DNA of 64,000 bases. Origin: Octopus sinensis (lineage: Eukaryota). A model generated the notes under the pieces. That model worked only from the letters and a program-made list of their open reading frames with translations, was not told the origin of the DNA and ran no database searches. The stretch spans positions 21,267,140 to 21,331,139 of the forward strand of contig NC_043023.1 of assembly GCF_006345805.1 (NCBI RefSeq). Direction: 5' to 3'. Position numbers and translations under genes: made by a program. Shown here piece by piece: positions 48,158 to 60,167 of the stretch (the first letter of the stretch is position 1; each line of letters opens with the position of its first letter).

Positions 48158-48168
48158 TTAGCCGATAC
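48158..48168 (-). CDS. EMI-EGF protein, probable terminal coding exon ((R)IG*)
   Basis: TCTTATTTTCAG acceptor; phase 1 gives R-I-G-TAA; 3' UTR with AATAAA follows. Confidence 0.5.
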
Positions 48169-49125
48169 CTGAAAATAAGACACAAATAAATAAATATAAG
48201 CAAAAATTTAAAAAATATGTAACAATATACAAAAATGTAAGAAGCGAACGCTATACTAATGGAGCATCCCACAAAAGGGTTTATTATAATCTTGCGTTCA
48301 GGAGGTCAAGATAAGAAACGCTCATTTGAATAGTTCAGGGGTGGCGGGATATGTTACTGTTTCCTTTCCCTGGTAAACAGAATTTTCAGAACCTTCTGAT
48401 GTTCAGCTAAGTCTGTTCTACTCTGACAGACTCCACTTAATGTAATATTGTGCGGTGGGTTCTTTCAGGATCCATACATATCTTGCCAAAGCAGTGGTGA
48501 TGATATCTCTCCTGCATATTACTTGAGAAGAAAATTTTAGTAGATATACTGAAACGTCAAAACTTAGAACCATCATTATTATTATTATTATTATTATTAT
48601 TATTATTATTATGGTGAAGGCGGTGAGATGGCAGAGTCATTAACACGCCGGGTAAAATGCTTGGCGACATTTTGCCCGTTCATTTAACGTACTGATTTCA
48701 AATTCCACCGAGGTCGACTTTTCCTTTCAGCCCTCCGCGGTCGATAAAATAAGTACCAGTCAAGGACGGACGAATCGTTAACACGCCGGACAAAATGCTT
48801 GGAGGCAAGTCGACCGTATTAATGTTTTGGGTTAAAATCCCGCCGAGATCAACTTTGCCTTTCGTCCTTCGGGATCGATGAATTAAGAACTAGTTCTAGA
48901 CTGGGGTCTATGTAATCCACTTCACCACCTCCTCCACAAAGTTCAAGCCTTGTTCCCATAGTAGAATGGCTTATTACTATTATTATTATTATTATTATTA
49001 TTATTATTATTATTATTATTATTATTATTATTATTATTACTATTATTATTATTATTATTATTATTATTATTATTATTATTATTATTATTATTTATTATTA
49101 TTATTATTATTATATTATTATTATT

Positions 49126-49445
49126 GAGTTAGAGAGCAGTGCATGCCATCAAAGTGACACTGGGGTAAAATATAAGAAGCCAAGTATACCCATCATGAAT
49201 ACCCGTCTGATAAGGGTAGACCAGGCATATGCATCACAACCATATGTGCGCGACATGGTGACCTCATATGAAGATAAATAGCACCTGACCTTTCTGGGGA
49301 GGGGAGGGCCCAGTTAGAATTTTCTTTTGGTCGAGTAGCCTATCCCTTTAAAAAATTTCCTGAATAAGGGTTGTTTAAGGATGTTGAACGAAACACCCAC
49401 GATTCCAAAGGTGAATTATCCAAACCCCGAAGAATTCAACCCAAT
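49126..49445 (-). mobile_element. (TAA)n-tailed retroelement 3' end, family unassigned
   Basis: GAGAGCAGTGCATGCCATCAAAGTGACACTGGGG.. abutting (ATT)n; same family at 53151, 54431, 57933. Confidence 0.75.
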
Positions 49446-49489
49446 TACTTATACTTACACGTTTTGTTGTTGTTGTGTGCTTTATCTAC

Positions 49490-49609
49490 GAACACATGTT
49501 CTCCCATTGAAACGGAACCCTGGTTTACACAAACATTTGTAGGACCCTATTGTGTTGACGCATTTCCCGTATCTACCGCATCGAAAACTCCTTCTACACT
49601 CGTTTACAT
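49490..49609 (-). CDS. EMI-EGF protein, EGF4 (calcium-binding type)
   Basis: [40 protein letters not shown]; 120 nt, phase 1-1; donor GTAGAT is weak, read-through gives RR* at 49482. Confidence 0.9.
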
Positions 49610-50077
49610 CTGCAAATGAAAACAAATTTATTGCACTTAATTGCATGTATATAAAACAGATGCATTATTTGGGGTTGGGTCAATGTAATAAGCACCAGTT
49701 ATACTCTGGGGTCGATGTAATCGACTAGACCGATTCCCCCAAAAGTTTGTGACATTAAATATGTTCGTTGTTACACTGATTTTTACACGGATTTTTCAAA
49801 CGGAAAAACACTTTGTAACTTTAGTCCTGTGTTTTGTCCCTTTATGGTATAATTGATTTTTGTTAGCCCTTGTGGCGAATAAGCGAATTAATTATTATTA
49901 TCTTTTTTCTTCTTCTTCTTCTTCTTCTTCTTCTTCTTCTTCTTATTATTATTATTATTATTATTATTATTATTATTATTATTATTTATTATTATTATTA
50001 TTATTATCTCCCAGCCAATTGCTTATAGATATACGTGTGTATATTGTTCTTGTAGCTGCTGTTTGTCCTTTACTTAC

Positions 50078-50197
50078 CAACACATGTTCTTCTATTGAAA
50101 TAATAGCCCCGTCTGCAGTAACAAGTGAAAGAGGTTCCTCTCTTGACGCATCTACCATTTCTCCCGCACCGATTCCATCTGCACGGTCCTCCGACGG
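50078..50197 (-). CDS. EMI-EGF protein, EGF3
   Basis: AVGGPCRWNRCGRNGRCVKRGTSFTCYCRRGYYFNRRTCV; TTTCCAG / GTAAGT; 120 nt, phase 1-1. Confidence 0.92.
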
Positions 50198-57830: not shown

Positions 57831-57932
57831 CATACACCCTAGATGTCAGAGTGATCGTTGTTTTTGTGGGGTTTCAATGAGCAGCCCCTTTTGTGTAAAC
57901 CCTTAGTGGCGAAAAAAGAAATTATTATTATT

Positions 57933-58200
57933 GAGTGAGAGAGCAGTGCATGCCATCAAAGTGACACCGTGGTAAAATATACGAAGCTCAGTATACCCAT
58001 CATGACTACCCGTCTGATAAGGGTACCCCAGGCACATGCATCACAACCATATGTGCGGGACATGGTGATCTCATATCAAGATAAATAGCGCATGATCTTG
58101 CAGGTGGGGACCAGTTAGAATTTTCTTCTGGTCGAGAAGCCCATCCCACTCCAAAGTTCACTGAATAAGGGTTGTTTAAGGATGTTGAATAAGGGTTGTT
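57933..58200 (-). mobile_element. (TAA)n-tailed retroelement 3' end
   Basis: Same family as 49126-49445. Confidence 0.75.
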
Positions 58201-58621
58201 TAAGCTATATTTGACCCGTCGCTCCGTTCTGATTTCGAATTCCCCAAAGTGCACTTTGCTTTCTTCCTTTCAACGTCGAGAAAATAACAGACTAGGCTCT
58301 ATGTAATCGACTCGCCCTCACCTCACCCCAAGCTGCTCTTGTGGCAGAAATTTGAAATCACACTAATTATCATTATTATTTGAAACAGTTTTATTTGGGC
58401 CCCTTCAGGTTCGTCGCTCCGTTACAGGAATCTGGCTTGTTGAAGATTGGCGCAACAGAACCAGAATATATCCAGAAAGTTGGTGGAACATCCCAATAGA
58501 ATCAGCAAACAGGATTAAATACAGCGGACCCTATATTGATGCAAGGATCAGGAAAACAAGTCAAGTACTTTTAGGAGAGATCGTCTGCCCAGTCGTATGT
58601 CAATATCTCATCGTATTAAAG

Positions 58622-59010
58622 AAGCGAGCTGGCAGAAACGTTAGCACGCCGGGCGAGATGCTTAGCGGTATTTCGTCTGCCGTTACGTTCAGAGTTCAAA
58701 TTCCGCCGAGGTCGACTTTGCCTTTCATCCTTTCGCGGTCAATAAATTAAGTGCCAGTTACACACTGGGGTCGATAAAATCGACTTAATCCCTTTGTCTG
58801 TTCTTGTTTGTCCTCTCTGTGTTTAGCTCCTTGTGAGTAGTAAAGAAATAGGTATTTCGTCTGCCGTTAGGTTCTGAGTTCAATTTACGCCGAGGTCGAC
58901 TTTGCCTTTCTTCCTTTCGGAGTCGATTAAATATGTACCAGTTACGCACTAGGGTCGATATAATCGACTGGCCCCCTCCCTCCAAATTTCGGGCCTTGTG
59001 CCTCAAGTAG
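58622..59010 (+). mobile_element. SINE family C: head plus two tandem bodies
   Basis: GCGAGCTGGCAGAAACGTTAGCACGCC head; GTATTTCGTCTGCCGTTA unit recurs near 58668 and 58852. Confidence 0.85.
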
Positions 59011-59430
59011 AAAAGAATATCTCATCATATATTAAAGAAAAAGAGGGATCTATGGAGAACTGTTTGAAAAAATACAGTTATGATATACAGGCTATGGGTT
59101 TTCATTTCTACCTACTGACAGAGATGCACTGGGCTAAGTAAAAACAGATCGACATAAAAACTACAAATGCTGGGGTAATTCAGGTACCCTGAGTCCCTTC
59201 TGTTGCAATCGTTAGGGCCAAGCCCCACCTCACCCATTGCTTCCCACATATGCCAGGGGCCCTGAACAGAGCTACGGGCTCAACTCCTCTCTTTTCACTA
59301 AAACACTTAAAACATTCACACGAAGATAGACACGGTCCGATTATTTAATAAGAAAAAAGTAAAAAACCACAAGAAGCCCCGAAGAGGAAAGTGGCGATGT
59401 GAAACCGGGTGGAATGAAGCATTAACTTAC

Positions 59431-60167
59431 CGAGAACTGGACACAGCAAGGCTTTCTCCTTCGGTTGTTGAGTTTCCAGAATCAAGCGTTTCGCTAGAAA
59501 CCGACGTTCCATTATTCAGTAAGAGACTCTCAGTCGCTGCTTCATCTTCACTCTCGGAATCTGCTTCATCCGCTGACTCCTCCAATTCCGCCGACTCGTC
59601 GTCACCCACTGATTGTCCTCCATCGTTTGATTCTTCATCCGCTGACTCGCCTTCATCCACTGACTCGTCTTCGCTCACTGACTCGTCTTCGTTCACTGAC
59701 TCGTCATCACCTACTGATAGTCCTCCATCGTTTGAGTCTTCATCCACTGACTCGCCTTCATCCACTGACTCGTCTCCGTCCACTGACTCGTCATCGTCCA
59801 CCCATAGTCCTCCATTGTCTGAGTCTTCACCCTCTGACTCGTCTTCATTCACTGACTCCTCTCCATCCACTGACTCGTCTTCACCGTCCTCTGACGACTC
59901 GTCATCCACCGGGACTCCGTCCTCCTCTGATTCCTCTCCACCCTCAGACTCTCCTTCATCGCCTGATTCTTCTCCACTCTCTTCTTGCTCTTCATTCTCC
60001 GATGAAACATCATTTACCGACGGGTCTTTGTCGCCTAACGTCACATTCCGCCCTTCACTATTCACTGACGGTCCTTTAGTCACAACTGACCCATTATTCA
60101 CCCGTTGTCCTTCAGTCACCCAAAGACCAACGACGAAAAGAAATAAGAAAAGAACGAGATTCTTCAT
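59431..60167 (-). CDS. EMI-EGF protein, exon 1: signal peptide + Asp/Glu-rich repeat region
   Basis: GCC-ATG start; MKNLVLFLFLFVVGLWVTEG hydrophobic leader; ESVD repeats; ends SSSR at a phase-2 GTAAGT donor (59430). Confidence 0.9.

Follow-up and report, generated by a model that had tools for sequence, protein, structure and literature searches.

How could a single secreted polypeptide come to hold one strongly acidic and one strongly basic half, and what might such a molecule do? The question is raised by a locus on the minus strand of a 64,000-nt stretch of the Octopus sinensis genome (NCBI RefSeq assembly GCF_006345805.1, contig NC_043023.1, positions 21,267,140 to 21,331,139), which is called the window below and whose own coordinates are used unless a scaffold is named. 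The locus is one real, unannotated protein-coding gene of the octopus, and its product is secreted. Between the ATG at 60167 and the stop ending at 48158, eight exons (1398 nt in total) join in frame to encode 465 aa. A predicted signal peptide and a hyperacidic block form the N-terminal half, and an 8-Cys module followed by four epidermal growth factor (EGF) domains forms the basic, Cys-rich C-terminal half; this charge-polarized composition is far beyond chance. An earlier note, written from the letters alone, had drawn the same eight exons with matching phases as one gene, and its model was rebuilt exactly, the two ends that it gave falling precisely on the first base of the start codon and the third base of the TAA. 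Its description of a secreted, charge-polarized protein with a Cys module and four EGF domains was likewise borne out, in that the EGF domains are recognized by Pfam and the same layout recurs in other Octopus proteins. The features of the locus, all on the minus strand, are as follows.

60168..60389, minus strand, probable 5' untranslated leader of uncertain extent, based on the open frame and a match to the related protein P0013
60167-59431, minus strand, exon 1, signal peptide and hyperacidic block
60108..60167, minus strand, start codon and predicted signal peptide, MKNLVLFLFLFVVGLWVTEG ahead of Q, read from the sequence
59431..60107, minus strand, hyperacidic block, residues 21-246, with 86 Asp and Glu, 42 Ser and no Cys
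59593..59885, minus strand, tandem repeats within the exon, an 18-nt unit (DESVDE-type hexapeptide) nested in a 105-nt (35-aa) unit, from Tandem Repeats Finder and a lag-35 peak in the protein
55908..59430, minus strand, intron 1, 3.5 kb, with transposon-like long open frames on both strands, from the listing of open reading frames
55907-55815, minus strand, exon 2, first half of the 8-Cys module, GICRVRCYKTVTYKRARRSWCWFLRRCTKYR
55294-55218, minus strand, exon 3, second half of the 8-Cys module, with the CCRGWTGTPGRC motif
54021-53902, minus strand, exon 4, EGF1, non-calcium type, phase 1-1
52374-52255, minus strand, exon 5, EGF2, similar to calcium-binding EGF (cbEGF), YRNEC..CINTPGSYRC
50197-50078, minus strand, exon 6, EGF3, duplicate of EGF1
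49609-49490, minus strand, exon 7, EGF4, full cbEGF consensus, weak donor GTAGAT
48168-48158, minus strand, coding part of the terminal exon 8, (R)IG and then the stop
47916..47921, minus strand, AATAAA polyadenylation signal about 240 nt past the stop, from a pattern search, its use being presumed

The seven junctions are canonical, apart from the weak donor of the last, and their intron phases (2, 2, 1, 1, 1, 1 and 1) all match. The donors of exons 1-6 read GTAAG or GTAAA, and each of the seven acceptors has a pyrimidine tract ending in AG. The sole weak splice signal is the donor of exon 7 (C/GTAGAT), a decayed copy of the GTAAGT found behind the other EGF exons; if it is left unused, a TAA two codons later (49482-49484) ends the protein in TCVRR instead of TCVRIG, which yields practically the same product. 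A seven-exon ending at this nearer stop was dropped in favor of the eight-exon model, given the conserved GIG C-termini of the paralogs. Exon 8 was accepted because paralogs end in CVGIG and CIGIGTI, because its acceptor together with CAGGTATCGGCTAA / GTATCGGCTAA is kept in other genomic copies, and because the AATAAA follows about 240 nt downstream of the stop. At the other end, the frame is open for 26 codons upstream of the ATG at 60167 and holds no other in-frame ATG, and the leader of P0013 (DVTELGRLCNGT..PNLFLLILEAV..) matches window positions 60354-60389 and 60168-60245. Two open reading frames of intron 1 were scanned against Pfam and gave no match.

The polarity of the protein is best seen in the counts for its two halves. 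Residues 1-246 comprise 87 Asp and Glu, 6 Lys and Arg, 42 Ser and no Cys; their net charge is -81 and their isoelectric point (pI), without the signal peptide, is 4.05. Residues 247-464 (218 aa) comprise 59 Lys and Arg (50 of them Arg), 3 Asp and Glu, 32 Cys and 32 Tyr, Trp and Phe, with a pI of 10.8 and a net charge of +56; in percentages, Arg accounts for 23%, Lys plus Arg for 27%, Cys for 14.7%, Gly for 12% and the aromatic residues for 15%, Tyr alone making up 6.9%. The net charge of the whole protein is -25. The hand counts of the earlier note (about 85 acidic and 5 basic residues in the first half, about 58 basic and 3 acidic in the second) agree with these computed values. The C-half has its three acidic residues at the calcium-ligand positions of the two cbEGF motifs (E346 in YRNEC, D423 together with E426 in DVNEC), and none stands anywhere else; every dispensable acidic residue of the C-half has been replaced. 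A rough control used the 39 other EGF-rich proteins that the C-half had brought up in a word-index search. Their most basic 216-aa stretch reached at most +33 (median +1), so that the C-half is more basic than any stretch of this length among the retrieved proteins.

The predicted signal peptide has a 14-residue hydrophobic core and small residues at -3 and -1, and it is nearly invariant across the family members described below. The hyperacidic block behind it (226 aa) contains four N-x-S/T sequons and 19 S-x-E/D sites, and it ends in a family motif, DSGNSTTEGESL, that is conserved in all family members. In a structural model of the paralog P0042, the signal peptide is predicted as a helix, the acidic linker has a predicted local distance difference test (pLDDT) score below 50, that is, it is predicted to be disordered, and the module scores about 85-88. 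A Ser/Thr/Pro-rich open reading frame of 312 aa on the opposite, plus strand (59311-60249) was also considered as the coding strand and was rejected, as it has no start, signal or splice continuity; it is the mirror of a GA-rich low-complexity repeat antisense to the acidic exon.

All four EGF domains pass the Pfam cut-offs (PF00008, PF07645, PF12662 and PF12947; E ~1e-17), and the scores over the four stretches are 63.6 bits for cEGF (cut-off 26.6), 63.7 for EGF_3 (28.5), 48.9 for EGF_CA (27) and 42.7 for EGF (21.5). EGF1 matches EGF, cEGF and EGF_3, and EGF2 matches EGF_CA and cEGF. Exons 4-7 are 120 nt each and of phase 1-1, which amounts to one EGF domain per symmetric exon, a usual though not compulsory arrangement, and each repeat has six Cys. 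By the consensus D/N-x-D/N-E/Q-C and C-x-N-x4-[FY]-x-C, the cbEGF signature is complete in EGF4 and has lost its first position in EGF2, and EGF1 and EGF3 are of the non-calcium type. The nearest solved structures by sequence are cbEGF arrays of ADGRE5, LTBP1, Notch, NELL and uromodulin, and the best matches of EGF4 in the Protein Data Bank (PDB) are the cbEGFs of ADGRE5 and LTBP1. Exons 4 and 6 are 96% identical, with flanks at about 90%; EGF1 and EGF3 differ in three residues, two of the differences being basic-for-basic swaps, and the ratio of nonsynonymous to synonymous divergence (dN/dS) is 0.42. A simple, recent tandem duplication of two exons was considered for this array and rejected, since exons 5 and 7 are only about 80% identical.

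The gene belongs to a small family. The closest relative, P0013 (UniParc UPI00069532CB), is 77% identical to it and runs collinearly from the signal peptide across an acidic block of 240 aa (net -82) and the two exons of the module; in the word-index search with the C-half it was 84% identical over the covered part. P0013 is a likely ortholog and probably an O. bimaculoides gene model, the organism being deduced from neighboring UniParc numbers; at the level of sequence, it supports the junctions between exons 1, 2 and 3 and indicates that the hyperacidic block has been kept between species. An unfiltered HMMER scan with P0013 against 1.84 billion protein representatives returned only six proteins. 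Four of the five named family proteins are from Octopus, the fifth being P0043, and P0013 has no given organism; the family thus appears to be restricted to Octopus. All six share a signal peptide (MKNLVLFLFVFVVGLWVTEGQ), an acidic linker ending in D-x-GN(S/L)T-x-EGE-x-L and a Cys module with CC-x-GW, and EGF or cbEGF repeats are present in all six relatives except P0045, an 88-aa model that covers exon 1 only. The word-index search with the C-half found P0001, the O. vulgaris 'fibulin-1-like isoform X1', at 51% identity and of similar build; its named matches were fibulin, fibrillin, LTBP and matrilin, and EGFL7 was absent among them.

Four Octopus paralogs, all uncharacterized and automatically named, can be set directly beside this gene: CAI9741403.1 of O. 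vulgaris ('fibulin-1-like isoform X1'), XP_014783437.1 of O. bimaculoides ('adhesion G protein-coupled receptor E2-like'), XP_029651374.2 of Octopus ('LTBP2-like') and CAJ1099417.1 of O. vulgaris ('wall 2-like'). They resemble it in the signal peptide, the DSGNSTxEGESL acidic linker, the 8-Cys CCxGW module, the EGF and cbEGF repeats, the (G)IG C-terminus and the direction of the polarity. The acidic linker is negative (net -5 to -9) and the Cys-rich part positive (+15 to +33) in four of the five paralogs. The difference is one of degree: the linkers of the four paralogs measure 39-75 aa, whereas the linker here measures 228 aa at net -81, and their Cys-rich parts carry about +9 to +12 charges per 100 aa (one of them -1), as against +26 here. 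Charge polarity is therefore a trait of the family that is pushed to an extreme in this gene (-81/+56). An exact look-up of the 464-aa seven-exon read-through model in a collection of 15 billion proteins found no entry. Word-index searches with the junction region and with the EGF array returned nothing related, a weak result, as the junction search also missed the known paralogs. No characterized ortholog and no paper on the family was found in the protein collections or in literature searches; the close, characterized ortholog that, according to the earlier note, would take away the novelty thus did not turn up in these searches.

Further members are visible in the genome. A paralog at C10:4124000-4156700 has the same signal-peptide and module exons; behind these, at a spacing of about 450 bp, stand over 30 tandem copies of an acidic cbEGF exon (DTDECKGDPCGEKGKCTNTQGSYTCDCNAGYEFRETTCV), all with nearly the same sequence. 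The family signal-peptide exon occurs at at least eight other places, among them C8:72.62 Mb, C26:0.27 Mb, C9:72.98 Mb and several unplaced contigs, and a second inverted pair of it lies 240-270 kb away, at C27:20997885-20998079 (plus strand) and 21028504-21028698 (minus strand). These copies of the signal-peptide exon suggest a cluster of an Octopus-only family in a region that is hard to assemble.

What, then, is the Cys module that joins the two halves? It spans exons 2 and 3 (GICRVRCYKTVTYKRARRSWCWFLRRCTKYR and, behind the junction, TASRRILTTCRRCCRGWTGTPGRCR), measures 57 residues with 8 Cys and stands directly before EGF1, and its CC-x-GW motif (CCRGW..C here) is invariant across the family. 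EMI domains comprise about 70-75 residues with 7 Cys, end in CC-x-G-[WYF] ... C and lie N-terminally in secreted multidomain proteins. The earlier note had named the module an EMI domain outright, which goes too far: against the Pfam EMI model (PF07546, cut-off 25 bits) it gave no match at E<=10, and the best score in the family, that of the module of the likely ortholog P0013, was 10.2 bits (E 1.3), below the cut-off. A PDB sequence search and a search with a module profile found no match, and when the P0042 model was compared with the PDB by Foldseek, all matches were EGF arrays and told nothing about the module. However, a scan with the EMI model located a genuine EMI gene in the same genome (C2:90174048-90174176 and 90190031-90190120, two exons), whose intron follows C-S-T-L-R, while the intron between exons 2 and 3 here follows C-T-K-Y-R; in both genes the Arg codon is split 2/1. 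In hhalign, the family profile aligned weakly with the EMI sequence from C2 (P 0.0037, probability 9%), with C-x5-C and CCxGW in the same register. The shared position and phase of the intron and the register of the alignment point to an EMI origin, and we regard the module as a probably shortened and divergent EMI-like module.

The gene is present more than once in the assembly. The genome amounts to 2.72 Gb, divided among 13,516 contigs, and scaffold C27 ends with the window, which forms its final 64 kb. A gap of 100 N occupies 537-636, and an inverted copy starts directly after it: the stretches tested (637-14118, 36866-46821 and the gene region) are 99.3-99.8% identical to inverted copies inside C27:21,181,300-21,248,789, about 19 kb further in. 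Since all of these stretches have inverted copies, the whole window is probably one arm of an inverted repeat; either this repeat is a true giant palindrome, or a haplotig was attached backwards where the scaffold ends. Further copies of the gene lie on five unplaced contigs, with introns 97-99.4% identical. The exons are intact in six further genomic copies, exon 2 being 100% identical in all, and intron 1 is 99.3% identical between copies. Exon 1 exists in at least three versions (245, 210 and about 210 aa), all open, in frame and hyperacidic, which differ by a 35-aa unit and by substitutions, and contigs C10767 and C11577 have seven EGF exons as against four here. Because a single assembly contains more than two distinct versions, the gene probably occupies more than one locus. 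Between the versions, the synonymous divergence (dS) of exon 1 is 0.03-0.10, higher than the 0.7% divergence of the intron between the window and its inverted copy, and dN/dS is 0.25-0.77; a dS above the intron divergence suggests exchange between copies.

On C10767 and C11577, the three extra EGF exons stand behind an exon of the exon 7 type in which both the weak GTAGAT donor and the stop close behind it are preserved, and the product of these copies may have four or seven EGF domains, depending on the use of this donor. Very long microsatellites, of the (ATC)n and (ATT)n types and with as many as 174 units, occupy parts of the introns between the EGF exons of the window (52420-52938, 50473-50724, 48971-49125 and 53661-53831). 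An element resembling a short interspersed nuclear element is repeated at 54380-54613, 53100-53336 and 49075-49323. Elsewhere in the window there are transposon remains: an open reading frame of 775 aa for an endonuclease and reverse transcriptase of the long interspersed nuclear element type (832-3159, plus strand), a reverse-transcriptase fragment (62795-63406, minus strand) and a Helitron-type fragment of the Pif1 2B domain (35990-36631, plus strand). Among the long open frames of the window, no other cellular genes stood out.

The reading that we prefer, and that we hold tentatively as a real possibility short of an even chance, is that the acidic half is a pro-region that masks a polycationic, polyanion-binding EGF array. 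Behind it stands the layout common to the family, namely a signal peptide, an acidic, N-glycosylated linker, an EMI-like module, alternating EGF and cbEGF domains and a tiny '(G)IG' exon. On this layout, repeat expansion inside exon 1 would have raised the acidic block to net -81, and in the folded half the acidic residues other than the calcium ligands would have been replaced, to reach a net charge of +56 that stems mostly from Arg, beside many Tyr, Trp and Phe. During secretion, the presumably disordered acidic block could serve as a built-in counter-ion or pro-region, so that the EGF rod, polycationic and locked by disulfides, might stay soluble and do no harm on its way through the secretory pathway. 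Once the protein is outside, the block would be cleaved near the conserved basic site before the module, or displaced by calcium or by a stronger polyanion, and the freed Arg- and aromatic-rich array might then bind polyanions, be they on microbial envelopes, in sulfated glycans, in mucus or in matrix. The same design principle operates in the pro-major basic protein of eosinophils and in prodefensins. The polarity in four of the five paralogs, the net charge of -82 in the block of P0013, an exon 1 that is in frame in all copies, the charge-conserving EGF duplicates and the basic or dibasic residues before the first Cys in most relatives all speak for this reading.

Several observations weigh against masking. 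The site at which the block would have to be released, SSSR-G, has a single Arg and no basic residue at P2, P4 or P6, and makes a poor convertase site. The net charge of -25 means that the acidic block over-compensates rather than just neutralizes. The P0013 model runs into intron 3 and contains no EGF domain, and does not itself show the joined EGF array; the splicing of exon 1 to exon 2 in O. sinensis is deduced from splice signals, phases and homology. Moreover, a structural or adhesive material would account just as well for the Arg-, Tyr- and Gly-rich EGF domains, the blocky charge, the internal repeats and the amplification of the gene. As to the place of release, the earlier note had named two sites. 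For the first, near SSSR-GIC, the relatives lend some substance, with TTKR, PTKR and RHRK before the first Cys and RRSR in P0013, that is, basic or dibasic residues at the same place; in this gene itself the lone Arg speaks against it. Release at the second, KRARR, is unlikely, because this conserved basic patch of the family lies between module cysteines, inside a confidently predicted beta-hairpin.

The strongest competitor, less probable than masking yet deserving serious thought, is a structural or adhesive material. In this case, the opposite blocks of neighboring molecules would pair, as in a self-coacervating diblock polyampholyte held by Ca2+ and Arg-aromatic contacts, to form a glue, an egg-stalk or egg-case cement, a sucker lining or a mucus scaffold. 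Comparable cases are mussel foot protein 2, with its EGF repeats, and the cement of the sandcastle worm, which pairs acidic with basic proteins. The strongly blocky charge (-81/+56) and the Arg-, Gly- and aromatic-rich C-half are what such a material would call for, and the 19 S-x-E/D sites of the Ser-rich block could be phosphorylated in the secretory pathway. Repeat numbers vary in both blocks, several near-identical gene copies exist, as is common for bulk secretory products, and the C10 paralog has more than 30 tandem EGF exons. On the other hand, the chemistry is that of Arg, whereas mussel proteins use Lys and 3,4-dihydroxyphenylalanine (DOPA); this small protein also has an unbalanced net charge (-25), and part of the copy number may be an assembly artifact.

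An unlikely alternative is a matrix or signaling modulator of the EGFL7 or fibulin type, in which the EMI-like module and the cbEGFs bind proteins and the acidic block acts as a calcium-buffering or spacing tail. The order of signal peptide, EMI-like module, EGF and cbEGF is that of EGFL7/8, the best named sequence matches are the EGF arrays of fibulin-1-like, LTBP and ADGRE proteins, and the intron position is common to the genuine EMI gene. However, conserved matrix regulators are unlike this family, which is restricted to Octopus, fast-evolving and copy-variable, and the extreme Arg enrichment has no parallel among the retrieved EGF-rich proteins.

It is quite improbable that the two halves are separate products, or that the gene is not expressed as modeled, so that unspliced exon 1 would yield a free 246-aa acidic protein and the EGF exons would belong to another transcript or be silent. 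Without splicing, the exon 1 donor (G/GTAA, window 59427-59432 on the minus strand) reads ..SSSR and then TAA, which makes an acid-only secreted isoform possible by retention of intron 1; the database model P0045 of another family member consists of exon 1 only; and no annotated protein or transcript fragment with the basic EGF array was found in the collections searched, although the fragment searches were weak. Against this, the donor of exon 1 and its acceptor are strong and the phases match, an EGF-only product would have no start codon or signal peptide, and all exons are intact in six further genomic copies; in addition, the family models join the signal-peptide and acidic exon to the module and the EGF domains, and P0013 joins exons 1, 2 and 3. 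Hyperacidic, Ser-rich repeat blocks are typical of mineral matrix proteins, but a calcium- or biomineral-associated role (for example in a statolith matrix), in which the Asp-, Glu- and Ser-rich block would attach to Ca2+ or to mineral faces and the EGF half would fasten the protein to an organic scaffold, is just as hard to credit, since it accounts for the two cbEGF calcium sites kept while all other acidic residues of the C-half were lost but leaves the basic half with no obvious role in an animal that makes little mineral, and nothing ties the gene to statocysts.

Masking and self-assembly, which the earlier note had offered as alternatives, have a common core, and it is tempting to speculate that one polypeptide supplies both partners of a coacervate or pro-drug pair. 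The product would then be either an anionic-masked, EGF-based cationic host-defense effector, which would be the first of its kind, or a self-assembling octopus biomaterial. It would have arisen within Octopus from an EMI-like/EGF scaffold whose repeats expanded and whose charges were sorted, and its gene would have been amplified to several copies; this broader proposal is attractive and still rather doubtful. EGF and cbEGF domains are normally acidic modules of matrix proteins or receptors. The array described here has been stripped of acidic residues except for the calcium ligands, loaded with Arg and aromatic residues and fused to an anionic tail of 81 charges. As a masked polycation, the molecule would give invertebrate host defense a new scaffold; as a self-coacervating material, it would interest biomaterials research as a diblock polyampholyte that is compact and genetically encoded. 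In either case, the gene belongs to an unrecognized Octopus-specific secreted family that has been hidden under misleading automatic names (fibulin-1-like, ADGRE2-like, LTBP2-like and wall 2-like), and it sits where assemblies and annotations perform badly.

Among known systems, the layout resembles that of the vertebrate EGFL7 and EGFL8, small secreted proteins in which an N-terminal EMI-type module with CCxGW is followed by EGF and cbEGF domains. Unlike in EGFL7, the module here has 57 aa and 8 Cys and falls below the Pfam cut-off for EMI, and the hyperacidic block and the polycationic EGF domains have no counterpart there. The comparison with EGFL7/8 and Nimrod proteins drawn in the earlier note thus stands as a likeness of layout and fails as a statement of membership, given that neither the word-index search with the C-half nor the named proteins of the HMMER scan yielded an EGFL7 and that NIM-type spacing is not present. 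Indeed, compared with Nimrod, Draper and MEGF10, in which NIM repeats follow a CCxGY motif, the repeats fit cEGF and EGF_CA rather than the NIM consensus, and, unlike Draper and MEGF proteins with their transmembrane segment, the protein ends three residues past EGF4 with no hydrophobic segment. The pro-major basic protein and the prodefensins, in which an anionic, glycosylated pro-piece roughly offsets the charge of an Arg-rich, disulfide-bonded effector, are comparable as a functional class and not by homology. The pairing of charges is found here as well (-81/+56; pI 4.05/10.8), but the pro-major basic protein has a C-type lectin fold and prodefensins a defensin fold where this protein has EGF domains, and by this analogy processing and a toxic or antimicrobial action are only proposed for it. 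Mussel foot protein 2 is likewise a secreted material protein of tandem EGF domains, basic, Tyr-rich and with calcium-binding EGF motifs; by contrast, it is based on Lys and DOPA, has 11 repeats, lacks an acidic block and an EMI-like module, and has no specific sequence relationship to this protein. The EMI-like plus EGF layout is of an already known kind; new are the diblock form with its sorted charges, the conservation of this form, and a family that is restricted to Octopus and varies in copy number.

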